Origin: Monocercomonoides exilis PA203
Taxonomy: Eukaryota > Protista > Preaxostyla
Assembly (NCBI GenBank): GCA_001643675.2
Contig: LSRY02000041.1
Coordinates: 812,178-876,177, forward strand
Direction: 5' to 3'
Length of the DNA stretch: 64,000 bases
Numbering within the stretch: position 1 is the first letter of the stretch; every line of letters starts with the position of its first letter. Position numbers and translations under genes: made by a program. The notes below the pieces were generated by a model. That model saw nothing but the letters and a program-made list of their open reading frames with translations, searched no databases and was not told where the DNA came from. This document shows positions 5,000-54,500 of the stretch, one piece after another.

Positions 5000-5034
<35 letters not shown>

Positions 5035-5078: not shown

Positions 5079-5109
<31 letters not shown>

Positions 5110-8107: not shown

Positions 8108-8140
<33 letters not shown>

Positions 8141-14100: not shown

Positions 14101-17100
14101 TGATGATGACGATGATGAAGACGATGGGAAATGATGGTTATTATTATTCTTGAAAGCATATGAAGAAGAAAAAGAAGAAGACAAAGAGGAAGAACGAGGA
14201 GAAGAAAGAGAAGAAGAATAACCAGAATCTTCGCTTCTGCTTGGACGAATTAATAGATTGTTCAGTTTGTACGTGCTGTTCAGGCGAAGAGGGCTAACAA
14301 TGTTGATTGCAGTTAAAACTCCCTCTTTCTCTAATCTTGTACGAAACTCATTCATTTGTCTCATTTTTTTCACATTCTCTTCTTCATTACTTGCGTTTTT
14401 CGTATTTCTTTTTGTTTTAACAGTTTCTTCTTCTCTTTCTCTTTCTCCTTCTCCTTCTCCCTCTGACTCATTCATTTCACTTTCTCCTTCTCCATCTCCT
14501 TCCCTCACATGTTTCACCGCCTCCTCCAGACTCAAGCACGGAGTCTCCTTTCTTCCACACAGAAACCAATCTCTTCCTTTGCCCTCTGGAATGGACAAGC
14601 CATCTACAAACACCTCATCCAACTTCTCATTCATCAAAGGCAGGCAATCAATGGGAATATCATTGTGCTCGTTCTCATCCACCCCAAAAAACGCATTTGA
14701 CACGTTAAACACAGAAAGAGAAAAATCCATGTCAAATTTGGAGATTTGACATGCAGATGACAAGTTGCAGCAGGAAATGAAGAGATCGCTGCCGTATTTG
14801 GCTTTGTTTGCGGTGAATGTGACCGTTTTGAACAGGAAATTGTCAGTTAGAGAGGAATCTGAAGAAGAGAGAGGGTGGAAATTTTTATTGGTTAATTGTT
14901 GTTGGTTTATTGGGTGTTTGAGAGAATTTTGTTTGTTTTTGATGGAAGAGTGAAGGTTTCTTCTGCTTTTATAACAGCAGTTTTCTTTGTTCTGTTTTGT
15001 ATTCAAACCAGAAATGTAATCGATATTGTCCTTCTTGTTTATTTTTTCTCCTTCGTTATATTCTCTTTCTCTTCTGTTATAACGTTTATTTCCTCTTCTA
15101 CTGTTTCCATTTCCTTCTCCTCCTCCTTCTCCTTCTCCACTTCCACTTCCACTTCCACACCCTCCACAATCCAAATAAACTGCTCCTCCTCTTCCTTCAC
15201 TCTCGTTCTCTGCTTCGCATTCCTCAAACACACAATTTTCAGCCACAAAATCGCTGCCGGCAAAAATATTGACTCGAATTGCGCCTCCTTTTGAGATTTC
15301 AGAGGAGCCAGCGAAGGAAAGAGAGGTGTTGGAGAGATGGAGGGAGAGGGAAGGATAAATAGAAGAGGAGGAAGAAGAAGTTGATTGCGATAATGAAGAT
15401 GAAGATGAAGATGATGCATCTCCTGTATCTTCAAATAGTGCAGAAGAAGAAGAAGGAAATGAAGACAATGTAAAATTGATGAAATGAATAAAAGGAATGT
15501 CATTTGAATTTGATGAAGCAAGATGTGATGATGTAAAAGAAGAAGAGGAAGAGGAAGAAGAGAAAGAAGAAGAAGAAGAAGAAACATGCTTAATTTTCAC
15601 CAAAGAATTGCAATCAACAGAAGAAGGATTAAACACATTGGATAGATTTGTGTTGCAAAACAAGAAACCAGAGGAAAAAGAAGGAGAAGAAGATGATGAT
15701 AATGATGATGATGAAGGAGAAGAAGAAGAAGAAAGAGAAGAAAATGGAGAAGAAGGAGAAGGAGGAGGAGGAGGAGAAGGAGAAGAAGAAAGAGAAGGCA
15801 AAGAAGACAACGAAAACACAATAAAAGGAGAAGATAGAGAAATAGGTGTGTTTGTATTAGAGAGTTGGAAGTTGTCGATTGAAGCTGTTCCACCTATGAT
15901 GGACAGAAAAGAGAAGGAAAGAGAGGAAGAGGTAGAGGTAGAGGTAGAAGAAGAAGAAGAAGAAGAAGAAGAAAAGGAAGAAGAAGAAGTGCTGCTTGCA
16001 ACAATCAGATGGCAATGTGAGATTGAAGCATCGCCTGACAGAACAAGCAGAAGAGAAGAAATCAAATGAGCGTTTGAATGAAAAAATGTCTTTGAATAAG
16101 AAGCGGAAGAAGAAGTGGAAGAAGAAGATGATGATGATGATGCAGATTGTTGTGAAGCGCTCGTTTCAGATGAAGGACAAAAAGACAAAGAAGAAGAATT
16201 CAAAGAAGTTGAGGGAGAAGAAAAAGAAGAAGAAAAAGAAAAATATGAAGATGAAGAAGAGGAAGAGGAAGAAGAAGAAGAAGAAGAAGAAGATTGCACC
16301 ACAGATTCAATCGAAGTGCCGCATTTGAGGCAGATGAAGCAGATGGCGAAGGAGCCTTCAGTTTGAATGGCAGCTTCGCAGTCGTCGCTCAACTGGATGG
16401 GAATGACAAGGTCTGCAGAGAAGGAATAAGAGGAAGATGGAGATGATTGTGAAGAATAAGAAGAAGAGGAAGGAGAAGAAGAGGAGGAGGAAAAGGAAGA
16501 AGAGGAAGAAGAAGATGGTGATGATGATGATGAGTGGGAAGAAGAGGAGGAAGAAGAAGAAGACTCACTCACTTTCTTCATCCCCTCCCTCTCTTCTCCA
16601 TTTTCTCCATTCCCCTTGTACCCTGTATATCCCAGCGGCCTAACCTTCACATTCACCAACCTCACGCTCTCTGTCATTGTCGCCCTTCCAAACACATTTA
16701 TCTTCGCCTGCATTGAACTCTTCCCTGTCATCACATGATTCTGCGCCTCTGATAGAGTCAAGCACGGCGATTCCACACTTCCACACCTGTGCCAATCTCG
16801 TCCTTCTCCATCTTCTCCTTCACTTCCTCCTCCTCCTCCTCTCCCATCCACATACACCTCCTCCGCCACATATCGCAAAAAAAACAAAAGCGTCTCGTCT
16901 CTGTTGATTTCGCAGTCCCTTCCAAACAGCGCATTTTCTTCTGCAAATGCAGACGCTGTGAAATCCAGCTTAATCTTCTCTTCCTTCACACTTTCGCTCA
17001 GATCCCTCGCAAACACAAACAGATCTCGTCCAATTGTCGCCAAATTTGAGGTGAACAGCATCGCTTGCAACAGAAATTCATCTCCTTGTTGGCAGTTCAA

Positions 17101-20100
17101 ATAAATGCCTCCTCCTCTGCCTTCATTCTGCGTGTGTTGTGGCTGCACAGAGCAAGTGCTTTCGATGACGTAGGAAGAAATGAACTGGATTTGGCTGTTT
17201 GGATTGAGGATGAGGCAGAACCCTCCGCCTGCGGTAGACATTTCACTGGCACAGTGAGAGACTATGGAATTGTTGAGGAGGAAGAGGAAGGAGGAGGAAG
17301 AGGAAAGGGAAGAAGAAGATGTTGATGATGAAGAGGATAATGATGAAGTGGATGATGTGGAAGAAAGAGAAGAAGGATGAGCAGTCTTGTGAAATGGCTG
17401 AAATGAATGCGAAGTGTCTGATGGATGAAGATTATGAGATGAATGAGAAAAATGAGAAGGATTCGACGAATGTGATGAATGACATGAATAAGATGCATAA
17501 GATGAATAAGAAGAGGGTGAGTGTGTGGAAGGAGAGCCACACAAAGCAGGCGAAGGAGCAGTTGAAGCGAAACCAGAGATGTTTGTCTGTGTGATGTTGA
17601 TGATGTTGATGAAAGTGTCATCGTTGAATGAATTGGATGGTTTAAGAGGTTTTATTGTTTTTATTGGTTTATTTGGTTTAATTGCATTACCTTTGTGTTG
17701 TTTAGCATTCACTTTGCGTGGATGTTGGTGAAGAGAGCGAAATGAAGAATGAGAAGAAGAGGAAGAAGAAAAAGAAGTTGATGCTGGTGTTGATGATGAT
17801 GATTTTGATGGTGAAGATGGAGTAGAAAAACGGTGTGAAAAACAAGAATCTCTTAACTCCGAATCTGATGGATTATTCCCGCCATCCGATCCATCAAGAG
17901 CATCAAAAGCATCAAAGCCAGCAAAATTATCAGAGTTATCAACGCCATCAGAAACAATAGAACTGTCAGTGTTTTCAGAAATTTCAGTGTTATCAATGTT
18001 GTCAAAGTTATCCAATTCATTCCCATTGTCAGGGCATTTATGAAGCAATGGATCAAACAGCTGTGAGTCAAACAGAAGCGAAATGAACGGCGCGTTCAAT
18101 GAGAACGTGGTCAAAAGCGAGCGTTCAACCAAAAGCGAGCCGCCTTCCAGCACAATCACTCCGCTTTCGAAGCTGAGGTTGAAGTGGAGGAGAGGAGAAT
18201 AGAGGTTGACATCGATGAGGCTGAGGGAGTAGGAAGGGGAAGAGGATGAAGAGGAGGAGGAAGATGAAGAGGAAGAAGACGTGGAAGAAAAAGAGGAAGA
18301 TGAAGAGGATGAAGATGAATATGAAGAAGAACGAAGAACTCTGAAAATCGGCTGTCTGTTTGTTTGTTCTAAGCTCAAATCGCACGTGATATTGAGCGTC
18401 GCCATCGTCAGCATCCCTCCTCTTTCTCCTCTTCCTCCCGCGTCAATCTCAAACCACGTCTCAAACTGCTGTGTGTGTGTGTCAATCAGCTTCGTCCTAT
18501 ACGCCTTCGCCACATTTGCCTTCCCCTGTACGAATATTTCTCTCTTCCCGACTTCAATCGTGCCTTCTTCCCACTCAAACGTCGCATTTGGCGTCTGCAC
18601 CACTGTCCCTGCCTCTCCCCCACACCTCCTGATCGCCACATACACGTCTGCACACGGAATCACCCTGTTGATCCCACAATACGCGTCCTGTGAGATCTTC
18701 ATCAACTCGTCCTTCACAATGCGGTGCGCCACGTGCGTGCTGAGCCAGCCGTTCAGATAGCGCCGCTCCTGTGAAAAGAACACAGTGCGGTTGGTAGGAT
18801 TTGTCGTGACACATTCTTCAAACGGGTTTGAACCGGGAACAGTCACAGCCCCGTTCACGACGAAGTCACAGCCAGTGCTGTTGACCGTGCAGTGGTAGAA
18901 GAGACACAGGCGGAACGAAAGGAAAGAAGAGAGCTGGGAGACAGGGAAGAGGAAAGAGAGACATACTGCCCCGCTGTCGTTGAAAGTGGAGACGCTTGTG
19001 TTGAACACGTTTTCGAGGATGTTGACTGGAACGCTGTTGGAAGAAAGGGGTGGAGAGTTGGAAGAGAAGGGGGTGTGAAGAGGATGGGATCGAGAAGAAG
19101 AAGAAGAAAGAAGATGTTTGTTTGAGCCATTCTTTTGTTCATCAGCAGCTAACGCATCCAATTCATCCTCTGCTTCCTCCTCTTCTTCTCCTCTTCCACT
19201 TCCAATTCCCTCTGTATTATGCATCTCCACCCTGTCAATGCTACTACTGCTACTGCTACTACTCTGTGTGCTTTCCACATACACCGCGCCTGCCAGCAGC
19301 TTCGCCGAGCACGACGTGAACAAACACTCCGCCACAATCACACAGTCCACCGCATCAGTCACAAACAGCGCCCCGCCGCTCCCTTGCTTCGCGGAGCACT
19401 CCAGGAACACGTTGCTCGTGAAGTTGACTTTGTACACGTGAGAGGCGTACAACATTCCCCCGTTCAGACCGGCTTCGGCATAGCTGGCATCGCATCGGTA
19501 CATGCTGAGTGCATAAAGAGGGGAAGGCGATGTTCCTGTGCCGTGAATGAAAATCGCACCGCCGCAACAGTCTGAAGAGCCAGCAGTGCATGCAGCAGAC
19601 TGTGGTGTCTTTGAGCGCACGAACGAGGCGCTGTTGAAAGATGCATCTGCGTGAAGAAGCTGCTGCTCAAAGAAATAACCAGATTGTGAATTGTTCTTCT
19701 GATGAAAAGTATCGAAAGAATTTGATTGGTCCCTGGTGCGCTGCTTGCAGTCGGTGAATGTGCAGTTTGTGCAGCTGAAATGACTGCATCGCCCGTCAAT
19801 ACCATGAACTACACCGCTTGAGAAGCTGTCTTCAACATTTTCAAAAGACGAGTCAAAAAGACAACAGCACTCTCCAAAAGAAAAATGATTCAGTGAAATG
19901 TTTGTTTGAGGATTTAGCGATGTTGTTCTTGTGTTGGTGGAATTGGAAAAAGAACAACTTTGAACGATGGCAGTTTGATATAATCCTGAAGCAAGAAAGG
20001 ATGAAGAAATATCAGTGAATTTCATATCGCAATGTGAAATTTCAGATGAAAAAATGTACATATGTCCTCTTTTCTCCAATGAATGCATCAGTGGAGATGT

Positions 20101-20562
20101 AAAATTTTTTGCTGAAGTTGAAAATTCAAAACTGACATTACGTAAATAAATACAACCTTCACATTGAAAAAGAGCTTCGTGTTGAAAATGAGAGAAATAA
20201 AACGTGCAACGAGAAAAAGAACTTTTTGAAGTTGAAGATAAAGAGCCAAATGATCGATTATAAGCCCATTCAAATTTCACCATGTCCAAGAAAGTGGAAG
20301 AATTTCTAAATTGAATACAGAAAGGAATTTGAGATGGAGGAAAAAATAGATGACATGTGGAATTCGAATTATCTTTCAGGGTTGTTGAAGAAATATCATA
20401 TTGCCTTGTTGAATTAGATCCAAGCAAAAACGATTTAAAAGAATTGTTTTTTGTGTTGCATTCTGTTTCCGAAAAAGAAGATATAAATACGCTCGGCTGG
20501 CTATAGGCAAAAATTAGTAGATACAATAAAATGAAAAGATGAGCGCGACAAAGTGTATGCAT
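7513..20562 (-). CDS. Giant (4349 aa) secreted/surface Ser-rich protein with Pmp-like (GGAI / FxxN) and CG..PC repeat modules
   Basis: Uninterrupted 13-kb ORF from ATG. It has a signal-peptide-like N-terminus (HLFILLYLLIFAYSQ) and recurring modules (GxGGA[IV][YF][LI]xC ... FxxNxAxxGxD[LI]F ... V[YF]V..CG...PCx[TS]L) separated by poly-Ser. No obvious C-terminal TM helix. Confidence 0.85.
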
Positions 20563-32895: not shown

Positions 32896-33744
32896 TTACA
32901 AGCATTTCATCTGTGGTCCATAGACTTGGTTCTCAATTCCGCAATGGTTTGATCCACGGAGAATCTTGAAGTGTCCTTTCTCTCCCCATGCTGGTCCCCA
33001 TGAGTTCTGGCACAACCAGTATGGTGTGTTGTCCTCTACACCCCATCCAATGCACAAAACAGCGTGTCCACCAGCAACACCTCCCGTTTTGTGAACATAG
33101 ACACCGCTCTTGTAGTTCATAAAGTCATAGTAGACTGTGAATGCAACTGAAAGAGGACCATTTTCATAAAGCTCCTGTTGCATTTGGCTTGCGGTAAAGT
33201 GAGTGAATGATTGTGATTTTGTTCTCACAATTGTTGATCCATTAACACATTTTGCTGGGCAAGCTGGAACACGTCCACCTCCAGATTGATATGGCATGCA
33301 TTCCTCATTTGTGACTCCGTGGCTCTTTGTCCATGCCCATGCTTTATCCATGTATCCTCCATTGCATCCCATATCGGTTGTGTCGCATGAAACGAGATCT
33401 TGTGGAGACATGTGTCCACGCCCGCATCCAATGATTGAGAGACGGTCGCCCATGGTCTCAGCAACTGAGAAAGCCCAGCATGATCCGCATGAAGCTTGGT
33501 CACGGACTGGAAGAATTTGTTCGGGCCATTGTTCGCGGGCATCGAAATTTTCTGGGAGAGCGTTGTCGGATTCGTATGTTCTTTCTTCATATTCCTCAAC
33601 ATGTGTTCCTAAGCGAGCGAGGAATTTTGCACGAGTGATCACAGATGCTGGGTATTCAACTGCAACCCATGTTGATGATGGATCGTTGTTGACTGTTTCA
33701 ACTATAGATTCAGCTAAAACTGAAGCAAAAAGAAGGAAAAACAT
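32896..33744 (-). CDS. CTSB: Cathepsin B-like cysteine protease (papain family C1A), 282-aa preproenzyme
   Basis: Signal peptide MFFLLFASVLA from ATG 33744. Motifs LPENFDAREQWP, DQASCGSCWAF (Gln, catalytic Cys), GCNGG, GGHAV (His) and QNSWG (Asn). Intronless and intact. Confidence 0.97.
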   Translation of the reverse strand: MFFLLFASVLAESIVETVNNDPSSTWVAVEYPASVITRAKFLARLGTHVEEYEERTYESDNALPENFDAREQWPEQILPVRDQASCGSCWAFSVAETMGDRLSIIGCGRGHMSPQDLVSCDTTDMGCNGGYMDKAWAWTKSHGVTNEECMPYQSGGGRVPACPAKCVNGSTIVRTKSQSFTHFTASQMQQELYENGPLSVAFTVYYDFMNYKSGVYVHKTGGVAGGHAVLCIGWGVEDNTPYWLCQNSWGPAWGEKGHFKILRGSNHCGIENQVYGPQMKCL

Positions 33745-33944
33745 TTTATTCTGATATTGTTTTATCAAAAACTGAAGGTCTCTTTTGGATTTTAATGATC
33801 AGAAAAATTTAAAAAATAATGGAATATTTTGGTTAAAACAAAACATTTCTCATAATTATAAAAAATTTAGAAAATATATTTCCAACAAATTGTAATATTT
33901 TCATTCATCTCTTTTAATGAACGATTGATGAAGCATTTCGAAAT

Positions 33945-36330: not shown

Positions 36331-36656
36331 TGAAAATAAAAGTGATAAGAGAAAATCATCAGGAAAATGTTTTATTTCTATCTAACGAACTTTACACAGC
36401 TCTTCGTTCAATTCTTCAAATGAAGAAGCCATTTTTATCTCATTTGATTCATCTGAAAGAAAAGAAAAAAATACTTATTAAGATTGTGTTCTTTTTTTCC
36501 TGATTGTTTATTTGGACAAACAATTTCAAGTTATGAATATGTTGTCTAATAACAATTTCCTTCATTTTTTTAAATTCAATCTGAAAATCAATTTTTTCAT
36601 TGAATACAAAAAATTATATTTTTTTCGAAATTATATTGAAAAGGATTCAACATTAT

Positions 36657-36732
36657 TTAAAAAAGAAAGTGATGAATCAATTCCTTCTCTTGTTTGAGAG
36701 ACGCCACAATCTATGGGTCAGTCGCCCATTTG
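36657..36732. repeat. DIRS 3' inverted terminal repeat with unique extension
   Basis: ATCAATTCCTTCTCTTGTTTG..GAGAGACGCCACAATCTATGGGTCAGTCGCCCATTTG is the reverse complement of 41150-41211, with small indels. Confidence 0.9.
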
Positions 36733-36865
36733 TATGTAAGGGTGAATTGGATAAAAACCGCTTTGCGCTTATAAAACCAAAAAGCGCAAAGAGAAGGAAC
36801 TACAAAAAACACAAACAGTTTTGAAAACAGAACTTCAAACGGTGGGAGTGAAAACGGTGGTGGGC

Positions 36866-36968
36866 AAAGAGAAGGAATTGATTCTCCACTTTCTTTTTTA
36901 ATTAAAGTGCATAAGCACCTTAATTATCAAGAAAGTGTTTCATCGATTCCTTCTCTTGTTTGAGAGAA
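36866..36968. repeat. DIRS internal complementary region (ICR)
   Basis: 36866-36901 is complementary to the 3' terminus (36657-36691). 36899-36968 is complementary to the 5' terminus (~41185-41254). The two halves overlap at TAA 36899-36901. Confidence 0.92.
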
Positions 36969-39033
36969 TCAATTTGTTGGATGATGAAGCCATCATCACT
37001 ACCACAGTGTGCGTCTTCTTTGCTTTGTTGTTTTCTTCCTCCTTTTTTGCTTGCGACCTTGTTCGAATAATGAATTGTTCTTCAAGTGGTTCTCGTTTCT
37101 CCATCTCATCGTCAGGCTCATCCACTCGAGAGGGAAATTCAACAGAATTTTTCGCTTCTTCCACACTCATATGTGGCTTCATCAGGCGCTTATTGTCCCT
37201 TAACACCATTCCAGATTCCATTGACCTTCTCTCCTCTTTGTGCTTCTGGTCTCTTTCTGGTCTGACACACGCCTTGCCACCATCCTCTGCCGACCGCTTG
37301 GTTGCTAACTCTTCACTGGGAGCATTCATAGTTGAAGCAATCACTTTTCCAAAGGTTGAAGCAAGATTGGCCTTCACATAATGCTTTACCAAAGTGTCTG
37401 TTCTAGGGGATAGTCGGGCAAACTTCGCAATCTGAGTTGGTGGAATTCCAGACATCGTTAGCGTTGAAAGTGTTGCAGCCTTTATTGAATAAGGAGTAAA
37501 ATGGCTCGGAATTCCTGCTTCCTTTAACGTCTCCTTTGCCAATCGTCTGATTCCTTTTACTGTTCGAGGATGAAATGTTTCGGTATTTAAAAACAATTAA
37601 TTTCCATTTGGTCTTCTTCTTTGTATTTCTTCCCACAAAACCTGAATGGCCGAAGCTGGGCAAATCGCTGGGTTTTCATTCAAAAACGGAACGGCAATCT
37701 CTGTTCGATTAAGCGATGTTTTTGGCCTTGTGTTCAGGTATATTCCTTCATGCTCGAATCTGGATCGTTCCATATCTACCCTTTCCAACTCTGTAAACCT
37801 GCACGCAGTGAATAACATTGTAAGCACAATGACTTTCATTGTCAGATGTTTGAAGCTCAAAGTCTGATTTTCTCCAAGACTAGAAAAGTATGTCAAAATG
37901 GTCTTCGGATTCCAGATCTCTTGAACCTTCTTCTTTCTTGTCATCTCCGTTCTTCTAAACCCTCTGAACAGTATTTTTATTATAGGAATATCCCCCAAAT
38001 TTGTGTTGAAAACCAAGCTTGTGAAGAATGAAATAGCTGAGAGGATAAGTTGCAAACATGACAGTTTCATTCCATTGTCTTTGAGTGTTATGAAAATACT
38101 CGAACATTGAGCGGCCCATTCATTAATATCCTCTGGAATTATGCCCATATCACTTTTTTCCCACTGTTCTCCAAAGTGTGCGAAGCCGAATAAATATCCA
38201 CCCCACGTCGACAGAGCAATTCCTGCTCTGCATTCCTCTGCCAGTGAAACCGGGAAAGCTCTTTCCTCCAACGCCCTTCTCCACCAGCTCTCGCCTTTCT
38301 CTCTGGTGGATTGATCAATATGGCTCTCAACCTTCCTGGAAGGAGACATGCACCTGTGTTTGTCATTGATAGCCCCTTTCTCAACACTGTTCTCAGACTC
38401 CTCCATTCGAATGTCCGATGAGGTTTTATCTCCAATAGCACATCCCAGTTCTGCCCTTTCCAGTTCGGCAGGAGTAATACTACTGGTACTCTCTCCTTCT
38501 GTGCCTTCCGAATCGTCATTGGAATCAGTGGAATAGGTGGGTGTACCAGAACGCACTCGTTCTTCCATGGATATGCCAGACCGTCTTCTCCCAATGGGCT
38601 TCCTATTCCGCACCAACGCTCGACCTTGTGGTTGTGTTGAGCTGCAAAGGCATCCAGCGTTGGAGAAACTTGAAGAGTTGCCAAGATTTCTGTGAGCTCG
38701 CTGTCTGCAATGCTGTAGTCTCCTGCTCTTTCCAGGCGGGATAAAGCATCGGCTCTTGTGTTTCGCAATCCGGGGAGATGAACTGCTTTCAGGACTATAT
38801 TCAATTTCTCCTTCAATGTCCATATCCTTTTGAGTGTCGGGCGAAGATTCCTTCCTGCATTCCATCTGTTCACGTTGAAAACGACTGCCGAATTGTCTGA
38901 CCGAAGTTGTAACTGTGATATCCGACTTTCTGATAGGATTGGGGCAAAGTGAGTTAAAGCAAGTTCTACTGCTTTTAATTCTCTGTAGTTGGATGATTGG
39001 TTTTTCATGGAGAATGGAAAACGACTGTGACAA
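36940..39033 (-). pseudogene. DIRS tyrosine recombinase ORF, one in-frame TAA at 37599-37597
   Basis: W..K.IL..(LMLF)TACRFTEL (catalytic Arg), RPKT (Lys), ICPASA, FTPYSIKAA (HxxR position) and LVKHY (catalytic Tyr). ORFs 37597-39033 and 36940-37596 are in the same frame. Confidence 0.88.
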
Positions 39034-40267
39034 TCTAGTGACATTCTGTTAATTCTGAGGGTTGCTCCCCAGGAGCATTCTGATGCATCTGTGGTTAGAA
39101 CTGCTTCTGGAATAAACACTGGATTTAGTCTGCGTCTGGGGTTCTTCCTCAATGTCCATCTCCATCTTCTTATCTGCTGGAGGATTGACGCATTCAGCCT
39201 CATCATTCCATCCCATCCGCCTGTCGTAACTCCTTTCTGCAACAATTTGCAGATTGATTGGAGGTGTAAAGATGCATCTGGCAGAACGAAGCGTGTAGAA
39301 CTGAGCTTTCCCACGAATGATGCGAAGTCCTTCACTCTGACAGTCTTGGCTCTTATGCATAATCTCTCCCACTTGTGACACAGCTCTCGCACTGCCTATC
39401 TTCTTTCCTTTGATAGACAAACATCGAAGCTGGTTGTGTTCCATTCGAATCCCAAAAAACTGAACTGCGAACTCGGAATGAGGTTGCACTTCTTCTTGTC
39501 TATCAGCAGATCGAGGCTTTCCAAAAATACGATTATTTCCTGAATTATTTTCTTCAAGACTTCTTGATCTTGATGCAGAAAAAGAAGATCGTCCAAATAG
39601 GCAACGACTCTGACATCCCATCTTTTTCTTATCTCCACTGTCACCTTCCTCATTATATGTGTGAACAGTTGCGGTGCATCTTCAAAGCTGAAAGGCATGC
39701 CTTTGAAGGAGTAATCTCTTCCCATGAATCTGAAAGCAAGATAGGGTATTAGTTCTTTTGATACTGGGATTAGATAATAAGCTTGTTCCAAGTCTAGGGA
39801 TACAGCGTTATTCTTCCGTCTTATCAGCCGCTCCACTGTCTTCTCACCGTCGCACTTGAAATGTGTTCTTTTCACCTCTGCATTCAGTTTCCGACAATCG
39901 AGAATTTGTCTCCAGCTGCCTGACTTCTTTGAATGAGGAAAACATTGTTTCTGTATTTCACATCATTCTGCTCCATCGGGATAACGACTCCTGTTCGTAT
40001 TTGTTCTTCTAATATCATCTTGAATTCCTGTATATTTTGTTGAATGAGAAGCAACGCTCAGTCTCTGAACTGAGCTTTGCTGAGAGCTTTTCTGGCTTGC
40101 TTGCTCTTCCATGTGGCCTGCACTTTTTTGCATATCAATTTCTCTCCTCCGATTTTCTTCCATGCTGAGAGGAACAAAGCGGTCCTCCCTCCTATTTGCC
40201 TCCTTTGCTCTGTTTCCTTGAGAACTGGGCCTAAAGTTGTTGAGGCCACCTTGGCCTCCTGCTCCAA
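38139..40267 (-). pseudogene. DIRS pol: reverse transcriptase - RNase H - methyltransferase-like domain
   Basis: IGGRTALFLSAW; KKSGSWRQILDCRKLN; SLDLEQAY; GMPF; AYLDDLL; FLGFEW. RNase H: TTDAS, NYRELKAV, RSDN, HLPGLRNTRADALSR. MT-like: LDAFAAQHN..DGLAYPW..HPP..LPNW. Lesions are TGA 40060-40058, a 1-nt deletion at ~39930 and TAG 39398-39396. Confidence 0.93.
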
Positions 40268-41145
40268 CTGCTCTGACTCCGCCTTCTTCCGAATTGATGT
40301 CTTCTTGAGAGGGCTGAGGACCGGGGGTATCTCCGAAAAAACTGTGGGCTTGAACGAAAAATGGTATGACTAAATCTTCTTTGAAGTGTTCCTGGTTGAT
40401 CTCTTGCAGAAGGCTGAACACGTGTAAAAGGAAGTGCTGGTCTCTGGAAGTTTCTCTCCAGCTTGGCTTCTTTTCTTGTTTCTCTGAGAATCAGTTCCTG
40501 TTTCTCTGTAAGGATTCCCGTAGAAGTGTCTGTACTCATCGCTGAGGCAGCTCTGAAACCAAACCCGCCTTGAATTCGAACCGTTCGTGCCTCTTGAAGC
40601 GCCTTGGTAATCATAATCAAGATGTCAGCCAGTCTTTGTTTTGCACCTTCCTTTGAAGTCGGTATCTCGGCTAAGCCTATGAGCGCAGCTATAATTGCCT
40701 GGAAAAAATAAATCTCTACCTTGTGACCCGCTTGATCTAACGCGTCGTTAATCCAGTTTTCTGTTCTCTTGGCAGGGGGCGGTTCAAGTGATAATAACTG
40801 GCTAAAATCCTGTGTTGAATACTCCTCAACTACATCTTGAATGGATCTAGTGGTAAGCTTTAGATCAAAAATTGAAAAATTCGGCGCCTGTCCAAAAATG
40901 TCCTCAAACTCCTGACAAATACGTTGAGATATCTCTAAGTCATCTTCGTTCTCATTTCTGTCATCCGAATGGGTCACCTCCTGTGAAAAACTTTCCGATG
41001 ACGAAGGTGAAAAAATTGAAGCGGAAGAAAATATGTTCGATTGAGATAAGGTCCCTGGTTGGCTTTGCGCCCCACTGTTCTGCATTACAGCCTCAGCCGT
41101 CGGCGCAAGTCCAACAATCGGAGGGAATTGTGAAGAAGACATCAT
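40231..41145 (-). CDS. DIRS ORF1 (gag-like), 304 aa
   Basis: Intact ORF beginning 5 nt inside the 5' ITR and overlapping the start of pol. It has a helical core and an Arg-rich C-terminus. The assignment is by position. Confidence 0.75.
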   Translation of the reverse strand: MMSSSQFPPIVGLAPTAEAVMQNSGAQSQPGTLSQSNIFSSASIFSPSSSESFSQEVTHSDDRNENEDDLEISQRICQEFEDIFGQAPNFSIFDLKLTTRSIQDVVEEYSTQDFSQLLSLEPPPAKRTENWINDALDQAGHKVEIYFFQAIIAALIGLAEIPTSKEGAKQRLADILIMITKALQEARTVRIQGGFGFRAASAMSTDTSTGILTEKQELILRETRKEAKLERNFQRPALPFTRVQPSARDQPGTLQRRFSHTIFRSSPQFFRRYPRSSALSRRHQFGRRRSQSSWSRRPRWPQQL

Positions 41146-41149
41146 TGAT

Positions 41150-41254
41150 CAAATGTGGCGACTGACCCATAGATTGTGGTGTCTCTCTTACAAACAAGAG
41201 AAGGAATTGATGAAACACTTTCTTGATAATTAAGGTGCTAATGCACTTTAATTA
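41150..41254. repeat. DIRS 5' inverted terminal repeat
   Basis: Complementary to both the 3' ITR and the ICR. Confidence 0.9.
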
Positions 41255-45523: not shown

Positions 45524-48500
45524 TCACTCTGGTGCTTCCTCCATTGCCGTGCTGTCTTCCACCCCTGCCATCTGAAGCCCCCTTTCAGTCATCGCCACTG
45601 CAAGAATTACAAACGGTCGCAGCCGGCACAGCGTGCTCAGCAGCATTTTCTTCACCAGATCTGTTCGGCTCACCATATACGAGAAAAACAGCATCTCAAA
45701 CGCCTCCACCAGCTCCCCATAGTCTTCACACTCCTCACACTCCTCACGCTCCTCACTTTTCTTTTTCCTGATCAATTCTGCTTTGTCTTCCTCAACCAAG
45801 CTCTCAAACATCTCCTCAAGCAGAAAGAATAGCACACGCATTCCATAGCTCAGCGTCTTGTTCCTGTGCCTTGCAAACACATTCCTTTTGCCCTCGCTTT
45901 TCATTGTTCCATTCTTTCCTTTCACTTTTCCCCTTTTCCCATGCCCGCCCCAAGCATCAGTCCAGGTGCCCATCTTGCAGCAGTCTTTGCCTTGACCTTT
46001 CTCACTCGCTATGTTCCCTTCCCCCAGAACAGCTTCACCCTCCCCTGCCTCTTCACCCCAGCTGCAAAACCCAGCAAACGGAATTCCGCACCCACACTCC
46101 CGAACCACCCTGCTTCTGCCTCTTGCATGCAGCTGGTGCTTGTTCAGCACAAGAACTGCACCAGCTCCCTCTCTCGTCTCTTGGCACAGCTGAATCCGAA
46201 CGAACAACCCTGCTCCCACTCGCTTCCGGAAACTCCACCGTTCTCATGAACCGCCCATCTTCGCTAACCTCAACAGCACTCAACGCACAAAAGAAACTCA
46301 GCGCACATGCACGGCTCACCCCGTCCTTTGAAAACAGAAGCCGAAAATAAACCAGATGCAGCTGGTTCGCAACCACATCCCGCACAAAATCTCCCACCAT
46401 CTTCTGCGCCCTCACACTCCGCCTCTTCTTCCTCACACACTCCTCCTCTCCAAATGCCTCTGCTTCAGCACCTGCCTCTGCCTCAGCACCTGCCTCTGCT
46501 TCCGTCTCATAGCTCGACTCCTTCAGCAGCAGCACAACAAGCGCTGTGATCACACACCTCACCTTCCTGTCTCCGCTGCCCAGCAGCCACTGCCCCATCT
46601 GCCTCACAATCCCACACACTCCCAGCAGCGGCCCTGCCGGCAGCGGCACAACAAGTCCCAGAATCTTCAGCCCTGCAAGCGCTGCCTCCCTGCTCCCCAC
46701 TGCAAGACTCTCTCTCACAACATCCACTATCCCCATCACCACCTTCTTCATCCCATCCCCAACACACTCCACTCTCTTGTATCTCCGAAGGGTGAACAGC
46801 GACAGATTCAGCGATCGCTGAAATCCTCCCAATCCCCTGCTCTCTTCTGTTGATTCTGCTTCTCTTGAGTTGCCATCCTCACCCATCCCCTTCGCCTCCT
46901 TTCTCTTCAATGGATTCAAATGCGACTCCCCACAACCCTCGTAGAAAGCACATTCAGCCACACGCTCCCGCACATACTCGCTCTTCAGCAGCGAATGAAT
47001 CGCATGCAGAGCAGAAAGCGATGCTGACTCAACAAACAAACATTCCTCCTCCACCTCCTCCTCTGCCCCTGCTCCTTTTCTTTCCTTGCATCCAATCCTC
47101 TTTTCTTCTTCTTCTTCTTCTTCTTCTTCTTCTTCTTCTTCTTCTTCTTCCTCCTCTTCCTCTTCCTCCTCCTCCTCCTCTTCTTCTTCTTCTTCATCCT
47201 CCTTCTCCAAAACTTTCCCTTTTGCCTTTGCCTCAGCAATCTTCTTTTCCAGCTCCTCCAGCTCCTCAATCTCTCTGAACTCCTTCAAGTCCTTCTCTCT
47301 CGCTCCCATCAGCCGCCACCTTCCAACAACTGCCAGCGCCACCCCCAAAAGCGGCTCCAGCATCCCGTTCTTGAAAAACAACACCCGCTCCTTCGTGTCT
47401 CCACTCATCCCAATCCTTGGACAGCCATCCCCCAACCTTCTGCTCCCCTGAACAGTGTGCACCACTTCCATCAGCGCATCGTCCCAGTGGCTCCCAAAAT
47501 AGAAGTCTCGGTAGTAGTGCCCCTTCTCTGCTGCCAAACACTCCCCCTCTCCCCTCTTCTCCTTATCTCCTTTCTTCTTCCTTCTCAGATTCCTCTTCTC
47601 TTCCTCCGCGTTGTCCGTTTCGTCTGACGATGAGCCATCAAATGCAACTGAACATTCAAATCCTGCTCCTTTCCCCTCTTCCCCCTCTTCATCGCTGTCT
47701 TCGTCTCCAAACGGGTTCAGATGCTCAGCAGACTCCCCCTCAAACACCTCTTCATTCGTGTCCCCTAGCAGCATCTCAATCCCACTCAGCACTTTGCTCA
47801 CAAATCGCACCCCAAATGACCTGTCCTCAAACACGCTTCGGGGGCAGGACGACTCCTGCTCTGCAAACTGCAGCAGCGACACTGGGTTCTGAAGAAAGTG
47901 CGACGGCGACAGTGCTGCCAGCGTGGCGCTGTGAGAATGCTTGGGCGATGAAAGTGGAGATGCCAAAGGAGATGCCAAAGGAGATGCCAAAGGCGAAGGT
48001 GGAGGAGATGGAGATGGAGAGAAAAAGGTGTTCAGCGAAGCACTTGTTGCACTTGCCGAAGCTGGTAATGATTTTGAAGAAGGAGATGAGGAGGAGGAAG
48101 AAGAAAAAGGAGAAGATGGAGAAGTCACTGTTGTTGTTGTTGTGGTTGTTGTTGGGCTTTCGTTGCAAAAAGGCAGCCCTCTCGAGTGTTTCACAAACAC
48201 CTCTGAATATGTCGACCCCGTCACAATCTGAACCCCATCTCCAAACATCTCGCTGAATGGCTCCTCTTCATCGCTGCCATTTTCTTCCTTCCCTTCTTCA
48301 TTTTCAGTTCCCTTCTTCTCTTTCCAACCCCCACTCATATCTTCTTCATCCTCGTTGCAAGACAAAATGCCATGCGATTTCCTCTTCAAAAAAGATGTTG
48401 ATGCTGCAAGTTCATTCACAGCATCCTCCCTTTCTGAACGGACAAACGCTGTTCGACGAGGAGTGCAAGGCAGGCACAAACAAGGGGAATTACAGCGCAT

Positions 48501-51500
48501 TTGAGCATCAGCGATGGCATCATGCACTTTGATGTGGCTGGATGGCGGGAACAGCACAGACGAGGGCAGCTTGGGTCCTCCCTGCTCAGCACAAGTCACT
48601 GCCAGATGTGATTCCTTCAACTCTGTCGTCATTTTCAGCTGCTCAGAAACTCCAATCGGCACAGCATTTGGCACGTCCTCCGAACAGACACAGCACACAT
48701 CCACATCATCCATCTCAGGCGATTCTGCATTCACCACGCAAGGCAACCCCGATGAGCCTGGTGGATTGGCACAGCTGCAACCATCGTTCTCATCTTCACC
48801 AAAAACACCACAACGCAAATTCGGCTGCACTGCCTGATGCCCCACACGCCTCCCACACGCCATGCTCGCTGCAATCGGACTCAGAAGTACTCTGCTTTTC
48901 GTCGGTGACACATTCACCCGATCAGCATCAACACTAATCCGCCTCCTCGCTGGTGGCGAGCTTGCATGCTGTGCCAACAAACACAATGAAGATGAAGGTG
49001 AAGATGAGGATGGCAAAGGCGCTGATTCAAAATGCTTCTTCTCTCCAAGTGTTTTGTCTTGAACTGCAACTCCACCTGAGCCCTCCTCCCTGCTCTCCTC
49101 TTCCTTCCCTGCCTGCCTCGCAAACGAAAACAATCTCTTGAAGAACCCCATTTTCTCCCGCTTTGTCCTCAGCCCCATTTCCTCTGCTTTCTCTTTCATT
49201 TCTCTTTCCTTTTCTCCTCCTCTTCCTCCTCTTCCTCCTCTTCCTTCCCTCTTTCCCTCATCATCATACACACTCTTTCCAACCCCTTCAATCGAAAAGC
49301 TCCTTCCCCTTCCCTTCTCTCCCCTTTCTTTCCCTTCCTCCTCCTTCTCCTCCTCCTCTTTTCTCCTCGCTTTCTCTTCTCTCATTGAAAGACTCTTCTG
49401 CTCCTCCCGATGCACCGCCTCTGTCTTCAGTGCCTCCATCTCCCTCACCCACCCCTCTACCGCCTTCGGGTGTGTTCTCCTCAAAAACCGATCCACCCTC
49501 AGAACAAGCTCCGGCTGCCGATCCCACTCAAACTCCTGTCTGCCTTCCTTCGCAGAGCTTCTTCTTCCCCCATCTACTCCAAATGGCAGGCAACCACAGC
49601 TGCTCCCTGCTCCGGCTCCTGCTCTCTGCAACCGCTCTTTCTCTTCCCGCACCCACTCTCCAAGCATCCGAAACCGCAGCGACGGAACAACAGACGGATT
49701 CGCAATCAGCAGCGACTCCCCCGACCGCAGCCCCAGACACACCGAGCATCCCTCGCTGAACGGCGAGGTGTCAACATTCGTCTCCCTCGTGCCCTCCAAA
49801 GTGGACGGCACAACTGCACAGAATTTGGGGCGTCGGTGGCGCGGAGGCAGCAGCAGAGACGAAGAACGCAACGACGCGCTGGATGCACTCGACTCGACAG
49901 CCGAAAGGAAAGACAGCACTCGCCAGTTCACAACAAACTGTGTGGGGAAGAAGTACACCTGCGATGGCTTGCTCTGCCCTCTTCCTCTTCCATCCATCGA
50001 CTGAAGATCCAGAACAAAAGACGAATTGCTCGGCTGCCTTGCTTGTGAAGTGTGTTGAAGAATACCATCAGACGGCAAAGAAAGAGAAGAAGATAAAGAT
50101 GATGATGATGATGATGATGCTGAAGTGATTCGAGGTGAAGTGGTTGAAGACGAAGTGGTTGAGTTTTCGAGTGGATAACTCACAGAAAGTGGTGCAAAGT
50201 GTGCCAAATCTCTTTTTTCTGCTGTGCCTTCCCACTCGCCTGACGAAGCAGTGGATGAAACAGACAGACTTCCCATTCCTGATGAACACCCCTTTTCTTT
50301 GCTGTTCTTCGAAACCAGTTGACCTTTGCTTGGAAGCACATCACAAGAAGACAACATCGAATCTGCTTCGCAATTGCTCCTTTTCTGCGAAGCAGGACGA
50401 AATTCCAGAAGCGACTGAAGCTGCCCAAAGTGCAATGTTGTCCCTTTCTCCTTTTCCATTTTCTTCTTCTGCTTCTTCTTCATTATCGTCTTCATTCTCC
50501 TTTCTCTCCTCCAAATCCTCTTTTCCTCTGCTTGCTGCTGCTGCTCCTTCCATTTCGGATAAAACCGCCCCAAAAACGCCTCTTCAAACGGAGTTATTTC
50601 TGCGCCTGCCCCAAGCGCTTCCGCAGACACAACTCGCACTGACTCACTCTCTCTTCTCACACACCCCGTCTCTCCTGCTGCCTGCAATCGCAATTGCTTC
50701 GATCGTTCCAATGGCGCTGCTGCCTCTGATGCCCCTATCCTCACACAGCATCCTGCTGCTTCCATCGCCTTCTCCTCGTTCTCCAGAAGAATCAGATGCA
50801 TAAACACATTCTCCGGCAGACACCTTCTTCCTCTCCCTTCTCTTCCCTCTTCCACTCCTCTGCCCTCTTCAACGCTCCGCAGTGTGATCTGCTCCAACAC
50901 ATCCACATTCCTTTTGCCCATCCTGCTCTGCCGCCTTCTCCCTCGCCTCAGCATCTCCTCAGGCGCCACAAATCCACACGGCCTAAATGTCTGCTCACCC
51001 TCTTCATAAACAGGTGCCATATAGCTCTCAAAGCATCCCTCACTCTCATCACTCCCATCACTCCCATTCTTCTTTGATCCCATCGAATGTTTGTCTTCAT
51101 CCTGCTTTTTCTCCTTCTTCTCCTTCATCTTCTTCTCCTTCTCCCTCTTCTTCATCTGCTGCTTCACTCCAGCCCAACACATCCCCTCTTCTCTTCTTTC
51201 TCTTCTGTCTGCTTTCCAGCCTCCTTCTGACAGAGCAGACGAGCGTGCTTTCTGAGAACGCTCTTCTCTCTCCTTCTGATAGGCAGCTGCGAGGCAAGTG
51301 CTGTCTGAAGAGCGCTCTTTCCCTTCTGAAGGTGCAATGTGCCTCTGAAACAGCCCAAATTCCAGCTCTTTGTCTCCTTTCGGAATCTTGAACGAGGAAA
51401 CAGAAGAAGACGTTGTTGATGATGATGATGGTTCAGTTGCTTTGTTGGTTGTGAATGGCTTCTGTTCGAAAACACATTTCTGTCCAACAGCATTGGACAA

Positions 51501-54500
51501 TGCACTCACCCCACAAAATGCCTTCTCACACTTTTCTGCTGCATCCCTCGCATTTGAAGGACAAGGTCTGAAATGCGAATAATCAACCACCGGAAACAGC
51601 GAAGAAAGAGGCATTTTGGAGGAAGCAGGCAACAAGGTTGGAGTTCTTTCTGCACAAAGATTGATGCTGTTTGTGTTTTGCGTTTGATTTTTCTTCATTT
51701 CTTTCTTTGAGTGCTGCCTTGTCTCTTCCACCCCCAATCTCCATGCTCCAGCTGCTGCTGAATGGCTCCTCTCCACCTTGTTTCCCATCCTTCTTTCTCT
51801 TCTTTCTCTTCTTTCTCTTCTTCCTTCTCCTCCTCCTCCTTCCCCTCCTCCCCCTTTCACCACCAAATACCCTCGAAAAGTCCGTCGCCCTTTCACCTTC
51901 CGAATCTCCACTGCCTCTTTCCCAACTGACCCTCTGCTGTTCGTCGACACCGCATACCGCTGCCGACGCACACGATACAAAACAAGCTCTGCCTGTGCTG
52001 AATTCGAAGTGCCCTGCTGGCACAGGCAAGACTGCCCCTCTCCATCTCCACCTCCACCTCCACTCCTCTCAATCACACAGTCCTCTTCCTCACACTCTGT
52101 TCGCACAAGCGGAACAACACTTTTCTTCTTCTTCTGCCGCTTCTTCTTTTCCCCTTTCTCCTTCTTCTCTCTTCTCCTCGCTGTGAACCCAAGCACCTCC
52201 ATCCCGTCCGACGACAAAATCACATGCTCAATCTCTTCCCCGTCTCCAATCCGCCTCCCTTCAAACAGTCGTGTCTCTGCTCTTGTCCTCCCACAAAGCT
52301 CCTCCTCGCACAGCCCCATCTCCACCCCTGCAAAATATCGGTCTTCCATTCTTCTGAGCTCTTCTCCTTCTCCTTCTTCCTCTTTCTCTCTGTCTTCCTC
52401 TTCTTTGCTGCTCTCCTCTTCGCTTGCTGCCTCTTGCTCTGTCGTCGACTGCCACAGCGGCGACTGAAACCGGCGCAGCGTCGGCAGAGGCGCCGATGCA
52501 GACCGCATGCTGCTCAAAGGGCGGAACCTTCCATTCGGCGGAGAAATCATCTGCTGCTCAGCCAGACACGAAGAACACAGCATCCCTGGCAGACAAGATG
52601 AATCAGATGACGAAGATGATGATGAAGTTGATGATGAGGATGATGATGAGGATGATGAATGAAACGACGATGAATGAGATGGATGAGTGAGGCAGTCAGA
52701 AGGAGAGCGGCAGAAGGCAAGTGGCGAGGTGTTTGGAGGAGTGCCACGTGCTGCAGTCGACCGGCCGCGCTGCTTCGGAGGCGAAGGGAGGGTGGGCAGC
52801 GGCGCAGACGGTGACACATCCATCCCGCCAAAACGGAACCGCACCGGCTCCTCCACCGGAAGAGGCACAGACACACCTCCAGACACACATGTTGACTCAG
52901 ATGCATTTGTTGAATGTGACATGGGAGATGTCATTGGAGCAATCAGCTGCCGAGAAGATGACAAAGAAGACAAAGAAGGAGAAGCATCCTTCGCTGCTGC
53001 CCACTCTGCGCTGCTGTGCACAGCCTTCTGCAGCAGATTCCGCTGCCCCTCTGAAAGCAGCACACTTCCTCTCTCTGCGCCTCGCCCGCAAATCACCGGC
53101 CTCGCCTTGCTCTCTCTTATCTCCCTTCTCTCTCTGCTTTCCCTTCTCTCTCTGCTCTCCTGCGGATACAACATCTGCAGCTCCATCGGCGGAAGGCGCA
53201 GAGGAGACTTTGCTTCGGCGACGGCTGCTTCGGCGGAGTGTGCTGCCAGAAAGAGGACTGCGGCAGAGACACACACTCCTTCTGCCCATCCAGCACCCCT
53301 CCTCTGCTTCCCTGCTTTTCTTTCTCCAACTCTTCTGCTTTCCAGCTGTTGCTGAGGCAACTCTCAGACGTTGACATTTTTATTTCCTCATCTTCATCCT
53401 CTTCCTCCTCTTCCCCTTCCTCCTCCTCTTCATCATCATCTTCATCATCTTCTTCCTCTTTCTTTGCTTCCAGCAGCTCCTGTCGGCAGGCACGCCAAGC
53501 TTGCTCTCTTTCCTCAAGAAGCTGTCGAGTGCTTTCGCCAAACAGAACATCAACTGCCTTCACAACAGCATCCATAAGCACCACCTCGTTCTGCACTCCG
53601 TCATAGCAACGCACATACACGCACATAGAGAGAGAAAGAGAAAGAGAAAGAGAAAGAGAAAGAGAAATTCATAAACATCAAAAATATTCATATGAATGAA
53701 TGAATCGACAAATAAAAAATGAGTGAGTGAGTGAATGAATAAATCAACAAACAAGAAATTTAAAGCATGTTTTTTTAAAAAAAAAAATAAAAATAAAAAT
53801 AAAAACCAAAAAAATTTGCAAAGCTACATGAGGCACACCATATGGAACATAAATAGCTCTTTTCGCTGTGCAAGGCTCGTTCTGTCAAACCCCAAGTTGT
53901 GCATCGCAATCATCGTCCGCAACTGGTCGCACAAGTCCGTCTGCCTCTGTGACTCTTGCCCATCACTCTGTCCCGCTTCTGCGCCTGTCTCTCCAAGCGC
54001 ACAAAGTGCTTTGTGCAGAATGCTCTTCATCGGCTGGTATTTTGCTGTGGCAGAGGCTGATAAAGATGGTGGGACTTTCGACGATGCCACTCCGAGAACG
54101 ACATCTCGCCCGCTCGCCACACGCCTCAGACGTGACTTGCTGTTTGGGCTGAGTATCACCACACATGCCTCTGCATATTTCATAAGCACAAATCGGGCAA
54201 TGCTCAATATAACAGGAGCCACGGAAATCAAAGGTTGATCAGGAAAATCCATCCTCAGCGTCAAAACCTTCAAAAACGACGGATAAAGAGACTCACAGAA
54301 TTTTACAAGAGAAAACTTGGCGAAATAAATAAAAAATTCACTTGTCGAAATAAAAGCTTTACTCTCAAACTGGTGTTACAACTTCTGGTTCTGAACGATG
54401 CCCATAAATGTCAACAAGATTCAAAGATACCGTTTCATGCAAAAATGCATCGGCATAAGCCAAATTTTCAATCAGATTGGTTGAAATAACATGCTTGGGC

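Follow-up and report, generated by a model that had tools for sequence, protein, structure and literature searches.

Few retrotransposons are as poorly understood as DIRS elements. The 3-bp crossover rule attributed to them is based on comparison of termini, and to our knowledge, the integration step has never been reconstituted. According to the published description of DIRS1 elements, integration makes no target-site duplication (TSD); 3 nt of junction sequence occur at each end of the element, and the target has a single copy of them. The founding DIRS1-like element, DIRS-1 of Dictyostelium discoideum, encodes gag, a pol with reverse transcriptase (RT), RNase H (RH) and methyltransferase (MT) domains, and a recombinase in a long ORF that lies over pol. 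It has inverted repeats of ~316 to 330 nt, an extension mainly on the right and NTT termini, carries an ICR near its 3′ end that is complementary to both termini, and inserts without a TSD. In the established (Cappello) model for DIRS-1, the ICR is essential and the cDNA intermediates are single stranded (PMC7192593). Long ORF overlap is a known trait of DIRS1 elements, and compact members with a left extension, such as AcasDIRS1 of Acanthamoeba and its fungal counterparts (3974 to 4801 bp), are described in a study that reports this extension for Amoebozoa and Fungi only (PMC3266345). PAT-like and Ngaro-like elements share RT/RH, a tyrosine recombinase and the logic of a circular intermediate but have split direct repeats (A1-B1 ... 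B2-A2); Ngaro moreover has neither the MT domain nor the long ORF overlap. A 2011 survey confirmed DIRS1-like elements in unikonts only and left Excavata uncertain (PMC3266345), and in the published literature, as distinct from Repbase and Dfam, we found no DIRS1-like element described for Metamonada.

The window, the whole stretch of 64,000 nucleotides that was analyzed from the Nanopore (ONT) assembly of the amitochondriate protist Monocercomonoides exilis PA203, carries such an element at 36657-41254 with its coding strand on the minus strand. The element proper spans 36657-41253; the A at 41254 is a target base, and a TT dinucleotide is common to element and target. We conclude that 36657-41253 is an old, structurally full-length but coding-defective copy of a DIRS1-like tyrosine-recombinase retrotransposon, with the following features.

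36657..36726, minus strand: right (3′) terminus, ~70 nt (direct reading, repeat finder, copy alignment)
36657-36662, minus strand: right short extension, with the shared core (36657-36658) at its end
36663-36726, minus strand: right inverted terminal repeat
36727..36866, minus strand: conserved spacer from ICR to right repeat; contains a hairpin of 10 bp (arms 36761-36770 and 36782-36791)
36867..36967, minus strand: ICR (direct reading, repeat finder, copies)
36867-36908, minus strand: ICR half against the right terminus, 35-42 nt complementary
36905-36967 (repeat finder: 36899-36967), minus strand: ICR half against the left terminus, ~68-69 nt complementary
36895-36902, plus strand: junction palindrome TTAATTAA, with core AA at 36897-36898
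36976..38555, minus strand: tyrosine recombinase part of the ORF2 frame (Phage_integrase on copy L008); here with a stop at 37597-37599 inside the catalytic domain
38142..40363, minus strand: pol, with RT, RNase H and methyltransferase-like parts (RVT_1, amphibian DIRS alignment)
40231..41145, minus strand: gag-like ORF1 of 304 aa, uninterrupted here and 79% identical to gag of copy L004
41157..41254, minus strand: left (5′) terminus, ~98 nt including a 30-nt extension (direct reading, repeat finder, copy alignment)
41157-41224, minus strand: left inverted terminal repeat, pairing with the right repeat
41225-41253, minus strand: left extension, a near-palindrome complementary to the ICR only
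41252-41253: shared core at the left end, TT on the plus strand and AA in sense

The original prediction was of a DIRS-type element in which the ICR reproduces the sequence formed by joining the two ends, and direct reading and the repeat finder both bear this out. [quoted passage not shown] The repeat finder aligned each half to its terminus, with 94% complementarity over 69 nt (36899-36967 versus 41186-41254) and 90% over 42 nt (36650-36691 versus 36867-36908), and the predicted TTA was read directly at both ends (36657-36659 and 41252-41254). The inverted repeats are short, as had been noted, but the proposed sizes of ~75 to 105 bp required correction: a core of ~64 to 68 nt pairs 36659-36726 with 41157-41224 (repeat finder), with the same arrangement in 16 copies, and the termini measure ~70 nt (3′) and ~98 nt (5′). 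Likewise, the gag ATG at 41145 lies 12 nt, rather than 5 nt, inside the inner repeat edge at 41157. A promoter within ~105 bp of the end, as was also predicted, is a reasonable expectation. Apart from the match of the right terminus to half of the ICR (36663-36701 and 36929-36967), there is no direct repeat, and the split direct repeats of PAT-like and Ngaro-like elements were not found, as the terminal repeats are inverted.

The coding regions resemble those of DIRS1-like elements in content and order. Gag-like ORF1 had no Pfam match. RVT_1 matched the window piece 39396-39875 at 5.7e-22 and the intact pol of copy L008 at 2.9e-30, and the RT motif reads YLDD, in keeping with the YxDD motif of the Ty3/gypsy-related RT that marks DIRS1-like elements. 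Pfam matches farther along pol were weak (RT_RNaseH_2, 0.06; Dam, E 0.018, below cutoff), but the RH and MT part aligned with a DIRS protein from an amphibian that contains PF05869, at 33% identity over 236 aa (E 5e-31), the alignment covering the DxFA...N and PPI motifs. By this alignment, pol contains the DIRS-specific methyltransferase-like domain after RNase H. In intact copies, ORF2 is 1156 to 1161 codons long; it begins slightly within gag and extends over the whole of pol, with the recombinase at its 3′ end; 0 to 2 stops were seen in the ORF2 frame across pol versus ~30 expected from synonymous shuffles. Phage_integrase matched copy L008 at 7.6e-8 (32.8 bits versus a cutoff of 27.1). 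The recombinase motif Y-S-I-K occupies the usual H-x-x-R place and is conserved across M. exilis families, which puts Lys at the usual second catalytic Arg as assigned by motif position rather than by structural alignment; in AmDIRS2, H-x-x-R is similarly replaced by S-D-L-K (PMC3266345). Single and profile sequence searches of the recombinase against the PDB gave no meaningful match, and a word-based homologue search matched M. exilis proteins only. Neither a DDE integrase nor an endonuclease is encoded. A Crypton, which has a recombinase without RT, does not describe the element, as RT is found in the same element in all copies. We conclude that the order of gag, RT-RH-MT-like pol and a recombinase ORF over all of pol makes the element DIRS1-like and not PAT-like or Ngaro-like.

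The element had been called complete, which is correct for its structure but not for its coding capacity: pol contains two in-frame stops (40058-40060 and 39396-39398) and a frameshift near 39914-39944, and the recombinase contains one stop. The frameshift could be a sequencing error of the Nanopore-based assembly, and the stop codons could not. The window copy is therefore no longer able to supply RT or recombinase.

At least 16 full-length copies of the family are present in the assembly, and their layout recurs at unrelated sites. Among copies of the family, 7 of 23 lie on one contig (C21), reminiscent of the centromere clustering of DIRS-1. The ICR junction is invariant in all 16 full-length copies, as is the T at its third base. 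Moreover, two diverged sister families (families 2 and 3) repeat the DIRS layout with 100% complementarity between termini and ICR and with all ORFs open, and both carry the ICR junction of the window family. We exclude a chance origin of the ICR junction because it is kept in the 16 full-length copies and in both sister families. The palindrome in the left extension is conserved, with a compensatory change between families. The spacer hairpin is kept in 16/16 copies with no covariation and a fold z-score of -1.4, and we regard it as a candidate structure, conserved in sequence and unproven as a fold. In a tree, the M. exilis families cluster together, adjoin amphibian and metagenomic DIRS-type sequences and lie apart from gypsy-like ones. 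The closest named relatives outside M. exilis are amphibian DIRS1-like pol proteins (Hyperolius P0018 and Lithobates P0017; 32 to 33% identity over RT, RH and Dam-like MT), which form a separate clade and thus give no sign of recent transfer.

Compared with DIRS-1, the M. exilis element has the same gene content, inverted repeats and ICR position, but its repeats are far shorter (~64 nt), its extension is mainly on the left, its termini read YAA...TAA, and protein similarity is distant only. By description rather than by sequence comparison, it resembles AcasDIRS1 and the fungal elements, being compact (4.6 kb) with a left extension, and it shares the long ORF overlap of the fungal elements; it differs from both in its metamonad host and in an AA/TT core with an unconserved third base.

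Integration was examined at 19 insertions, and element and target have a core of two bases in common, TT on the window plus strand and AA in sense. The original prediction had placed the crossover at TTA and expected a TTA rule in the flanks of other copies; only TT is shared. Across the 19 insertions, the third base is T at 11, C at 6 and A at 2, and it is target derived, as the empty paralogous sites for four further copies reveal. These empty sites (L009, 3 paralogs; L013, 2; L005, 3; L015, 5) are paralogues with 80 to 94% identity rather than true pre-insertion alleles. Their flanks abut on a single AA (a single A for L015) with no larger duplication, whereas occupied sites carry AA at both ends. 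Thus, four insertions occurred without a TSD, as had been proposed for the window copy, sharing 2 nt with the target (1 nt in L015, where target and junction are identical at only one base). Targets also resemble the junction more widely, being T rich upstream followed by Y-AA and AA at +5/+6, with a similarity of 8.06 versus 5.36 of 17 positions (resampling p<5e-5). Four copies (L005, L011, L014 and L015) have TA for AA at one end. The target of L015 explains its TA, and that of L005 is a later change because both its target and its junction read AA. For L014, no paralogue usefully reached the junction, and paralogues of L004 match its 5′ flank but do not continue into its 3′ flank and so are silent on that side. 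A pattern search of this genome found no empty site for the window copy, whose flanks occur at one other locus only, that of copy L002 on C52, which is also occupied by the element. True empty alleles are predicted to read flank-Y-AA-flank, which for the window copy would be CATTATTTATTCAAA on the plus strand; the empty site predicted for this copy, CATTAT-TT-ATTCAAA, has the letters forecast originally and follows from the family rule.

Replication steps for the M. exilis element are taken over from Dictyostelium DIRS-1 and would proceed as follows. A transcript starting and ending inside the termini would be reverse transcribed, and the ICR would bridge and template the missing ends, joining the 3′ end to the 5′ end. 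The expected circle join would read ...TTTTTTAATTAAAG... between a full right repeat and a full left repeat; the genome assembly contains no match to such a head-to-tail junction flanked by a complete repeat on either side. The recombinase of the element would then recombine the double-stranded circle with a genomic site resembling the junction, with exchange effectively taking place at AA. Reading the ICR as the circle junction is not new and repeats the published DIRS1 model (PMC3266345, PMC7192593). The empty sites found within the same genome refine that model to a two-base AA and do not overturn it. Taken as a whole, the best explanation is a dead full-length DIRS1-like copy, descended from an ICR-bridged circle that recombined at a junction-like AA site, to which we assign a probability of roughly 0.85.

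One way in which AA could come to lie at both ends without a circle crossover is as a 2-bp TSD, produced when a linear cDNA (TTAAAG...TTTTTT) is inserted where staggered cuts flank a favored AA. The footprint would be the same, with one AA in empty sites and two in occupied ones; moreover, DIRS-1 cDNA is mostly linear and single stranded with a circle junction that could not be amplified (PMC7192593), and the one-base identity at L015 would fit. The ICR, however, encodes exactly one AA between the ends in 16/16 copies and in the sister families, and the AA therefore belongs to the templated junction of the element. The element also encodes a tyrosine recombinase but neither a DDE integrase nor an endonuclease, and its targets resemble the junction on both sides, as site-specific recombination predicts. 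We consider a TSD unlikely and favor circle recombination.

A second rival reading is that the window copy is still autonomous and that its frameshift and stops are Nanopore assembly errors. Repeats are hard to polish in an ONT-based assembly, and L002, a 99% identical twin, has no recombinase stop. Yet the two pol stops are substitutions found in the twin as well, the window copy is 9 to 12% diverged from all other members of the family and has more terminus-ICR mismatches than younger copies, and none of the 16 full-length copies has all three ORFs open, each being disrupted differently. Autonomy is thus very improbable. Least credible of all is that another kind of element (PAT-like, Ngaro-like, Crypton or LTR), or a nested or assembly artifact, mimics the layout of inverted repeats and ICR. 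Recombinase and RT are common to those groups, and two copies (L006 and L020) sit in perfect palindromes and may be artifacts, but the inverted repeats, MT-like domain and long ORF overlap do not fit the other groups, and the layout is repeated at unrelated loci by 16 copies and again by two diverged families. We conclude that the window copy is an ordinary dead DIRS1-like copy and that nothing unusual about it is left to explain.

Relative to the published literature, the new finding is that well-resolved DIRS1-like elements occur in Metamonada, with open ORFs in two sister families. A broader reading is possible but, taken together, rather doubtful: that families 2 and 3 are active now or were very recently, that a Lys-for-Arg recombinase exchanges over ≤2 nt at a junction-like target, that these are the first DIRS1-like elements firmly documented in Metamonada, that the architecture of inverted repeats, ICR and long ORF overlap predates the split of metamonads from Amorphea, and that the left-extension palindrome acts in priming or joining cDNA ends. 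For DIRS integration, the many copies and unoccupied paralogous sites limit what element and target share to two bases, and the targets look like the circle junction. Unclassified repeats account for 35% of the assembly in the published description of the M. exilis genome, and the DIRS1-like families fill part of that annotation. Finally, the finding of three families with the complete DIRS1 layout in an oxymonad extends the range of hosts confirmed for these elements and argues for an ancient origin.

Direct reading of the plus strand placed TTA at 36657-36659 and again at 41252-41254, with an internal region that reads CTTTCTTTTTTAATTAAAGTGC. A repeat finder recovered 94% complementarity over 69 nt between 36899-36967 and 41186-41254, 90% complementarity over 42 nt between 36650-36691 and 36867-36908, and an inverted-repeat core in which 36659-36726 is paired with 41157-41224. 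The DIRS layout of the original prediction, with TTA at those positions and an internal complementary region (ICR) matching the termini, was confirmed by both approaches. Every coding frame sits on the minus strand, defined here as sense, so that the element runs from 41254 (5′) to 36657 (3′).

Parts of the element (minus strand, 41254 to 36657)
Left terminus: 98 nt; sense 5′ to 3′, 1 target-derived base, a 30-nt extension complementary only to the ICR, and a ~68-nt repeat
gag: 304 aa (window copy) or 305 aa (other copies)
pol: ~743 aa in intact copies; RVT_1 match at 2.9e-30
Recombinase frame: Phage_integrase match of the catalytic part, above the Pfam cutoff
ICR: two halves, complementary over 68 nt and 35 nt
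Spacer: 140 nt, conserved, between the ICR and the right terminus
Right terminus: last part, at the 3′ end in sense orientation

The four-way relation among the left terminus, left ICR, right terminus, and right ICR was visible in each copy, and the ICR junction, ...CACTTTAATTAAAAAAGAAAG..., was identical in every copy. Pfam matches of pol to RNase H and Dam were weak, and the RH-MT part of pol aligned over 236 aa (33% identity; E 5e-31) to an amphibian DIRS protein carrying PF05869. The recombinase frame was open across the entire pol gene, with 0 to 2 stops versus ~30 (minimum, 15) in synonymous-codon shuffles, and the other alternative frame contained ~50 stops, matching expectation. The same arrangement has been reported for DIRS1 as “considerable overlap between pol and YR” (PMC3266345). 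PAT or Ngaro identity was rejected, as the split direct repeats of those elements are absent. We conclude from the anatomy and the pol/recombinase overlap that the element has all of the structural hallmarks of the DIRS1-like group.

Two potential hairpins were also observed. The spacer contains a 10-bp hairpin (CTTTGCGCTT / AAGCGCAAAG; 36761-36791) that was kept in 16/16 copies, among which no covariation in the hairpin was seen, and its location is reminiscent of the 3′ hairpin put forward as the reverse-transcription primer in DIRS-1. The left extension (41225-41253; ICR complement, 36905-36935) is a 26-nt near-palindrome, AATTAAAGTGC-ATAA-GCACCTTAATT, the lone mismatch of which corresponds to a G:T pair in the opposite strand. 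In two sister families, the extension reads AATAAAAGTGC...GCACCTTTATT; there, A:T replaces T:A, a compensatory change suggesting that the hairpin is functional in RNA or cDNA.

The genome searched was the ONT assembly of strain PA203 (82,301,135 bases in 101 contigs), the paper on which contains no mention of DIRS, with 29 Mb of repeats left unclassified (PMC8767320). The top protein matches of the element were M. exilis gene models (91-97% identity) labelled only “putative reverse transcriptase” or “uncharacterized protein.” DNA searches returned 16 full-length copies of the window copy's family, 84-99% identical to it, besides deletion derivatives and fragments. The copy L002, on contig C52, has 99% identity to the window copy and both flanks in common with it, which makes L002 a duplicate of the window locus. 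Contig C21 (1.32 Mb; 1.6% of the genome) holds 7 of the 23 long copies of the family, a clustering that recalls DIRS-1 at Dictyostelium centromeres, and several paralogous flank repeats likewise map to it.

Judged against the open frames of sister copies, the window copy retains gag, but its pol contains in-frame stops at 40058-40060 and 39396-39398 and a frameshift near 39914-39944, and its recombinase frame contains a stop at 37597-37599 that is absent from the twin L002. Thus, the element is complete, as originally predicted, in structure but not in coding. Indels in the window copy may be errors, since the assembly is Nanopore based; the stops are substitutions. All three frames were open in 0 of 16 copies. 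Apart from its twin, every copy differs from the window copy by 9-12%, and mismatches between termini and ICR are more numerous in the window copy than in a younger subgroup, which differs by 3-5%. Two more DIRS1-like families, with ~65-68% DNA identity to the first and the same layout of inverted terminal repeats (ITRs) and ICR, were found at the following loci.

Sister-family copies in the M. exilis genome (G000)
L056: G000:C17:1104700-1111400, 4669 bp
L057: C30:845600-852300, 4669 bp; 99.4% alike to L056
L055: C31:751300-758000, 4573 bp

In all three, the terminus-ICR arms were 100% complementary and three ORFs were open, encoding gag (308-341 aa), pol (717-728 aa), and an overlapping recombinase (1156 aa). 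These families look recently active, unlike that of the window copy.

Elsewhere in the window, a 3.1-kb microsatellite of ~625 AAAGA copies (2860-5954) accounts for the extreme purine skew at the window start. Very long minus-strand ORFs at 7513-20562 (4349 aa) and 46053-53360 (2435 aa) gave no Pfam match at E≤0.001, and 32896-33768 holds a gene for a papain-family cysteine protease.

The 3′ ends of 19 independent insertions were all ...TTTTTT followed by AA (TA in two copies); the 5′ ends were N followed by AA and TTAAAG, where N was T (11 insertions), C (6), or A (2). The ICR base at the N position was T in 16/16 full-length copies. Several insertions sat in repeated DNA, and flank searches retrieved paralogues that represent unoccupied sites.

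Empty and occupied sites
L009 (3 paralogues; sense): empty, ...ttc-AA-agaagag...; occupied, ...ttc-AA-[element]-AA-agaagag...
L013 (2 paralogues; sense): empty, ...tgc-AA-agaaga...; occupied, AA at both ends
L005 (3 paralogues; plus strand): empty, ...gttat-TT-gcaaaag...; occupied, TA (a later change) at the low and TT at the high end
L015 (5 paralogues; sense): empty, ...cact-A-(c/t)tgaaatc...; occupied, A at both ends

At all four, the flanks of the empty site meet on one core copy, there is no duplication beyond the core, and the base 5′ of the core is target derived. L015 has a single base in common with the junction, and its odd 5′-end TA is target sequence. In the sister families, TT was common to the ends and the next base varied between copies. 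Given the four empty-site sets and the sister-family ends, effective exchange is apparently limited to 2 nt or fewer. The empty site predicted for the window copy, CATTATTTATTCAAA, was absent from this assembly. Because N varies among insertions, TTA at both ends holds for the window copy but not for the family, the core of which is at most 2 nt. We conclude that the original interpretation is correct in kind, overstated on completeness, and over-strict on TTA.

Target choice was analyzed for 18 rebuilt targets, with 4192 YAA sites from the same loci as controls. Insertion sites were T-rich at −9 to −4 (4.06 of 6 positions versus 2.07 in controls), and A was present at +5 in 15/18 and at +6 in 16/18 sites (binomial P of 2e-4 and 6e-6). 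Of 17 flanking positions, 8.06 agreed with the circle junction of the element itself, versus 5.36 in controls (resampling P<5e-5). Site-specific recombination would predict such a resemblance of target to donor junction.

In the published model, recombination takes place between the junction trinucleotide and a genomic trinucleotide of the same sequence, and one copy ends on each side (PMC7192593; PMC3266345), and thus the earlier circle-junction reading re-derived the standard model. For DIRS-1, retrotransposition after first-strand synthesis needs the ICR, the cDNA is single-stranded and mostly linear, and the circle junction has so far yielded no amplification (PMC7192593). The present analysis demonstrates how the element is built, that its ICR junction does not vary, which footprint insertion leaves, and which targets are preferred. 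In most copies, a divergent 7-nt block in the right terminus has the right-ICR type of sequence; in four others (L007, L013, L014, and L017), which belong to different lineages, it has the left-terminus type. Such switching would be expected if ends were rebuilt by copying across short blocks common to all four repeats. Four copies (L016, L017, L018, and L019) are deletion derivatives in which recombination between 39-nt direct repeats (36663-36701 / 36929-36967), one in the right terminus and the other in an ICR half, has recurrently removed 266 nt. Both the block switching and the 266-nt losses fit ICR templating. Two copies, L006 (G000:C27:598698-606292) and L020 (C80:641636-648987), each lie inside a perfect large palindrome, with flanks that are 100% inverted copies (587 nt and 1500 nt) and a fold point at the terminus/ICR inverted repeat. 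The palindromes are either fold-back rearrangements seeded by the inverted repeats of the element or Nanopore assembly artefacts.

Compared with the elements surveyed by Piednoel et al. (PMC3266345), the M. exilis element is within the size range (4.6 kb; range, 3974-6283 bp), and its ITRs (~64 nt) are at or just under the shortest (66-316 nt). It has a left extension, found in that survey only in fungi and amoebozoa, and its termini are YAA...TAA, whereas the norm is NTT (23/28 elements). The recombinase motif is Y-S-I-K rather than H-x-x-R, itself variable (e.g., S-D-L-K). An alignment (37370-37510) indicated that (Y/H/S)-S-x-K is conserved in all M. exilis recombinase paralogues, with Ser and Lys kept across diverged ones, and thus the motif is a lineage trait and not decay. 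An invariant Arg lies 12 residues ahead of the presumed catalytic Tyr.

In a quick tree of sequences other than named PAT or Ngaro references, the M. exilis families and one outside sequence formed one clade (support, 99) that adjoins a clade of amphibian and metagenomic DIRS-type sequences, apart from gypsy-like elements (support, 100). The outside sequence, L053 (GCA_009771425.1, WPCJ01145137.1; 3.8-kb contig), is the nearest relative outside M. exilis, with pol 43% identical. The 2011 survey confirmed DIRS1-like elements only in unikonts, with Excavata uncertain (PMC3266345), and no description of such elements in Metamonada or M. exilis was found in the literature, a search separate from Repbase/Dfam. 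We conclude that the element is of a known type, in a host group where that type is undocumented.
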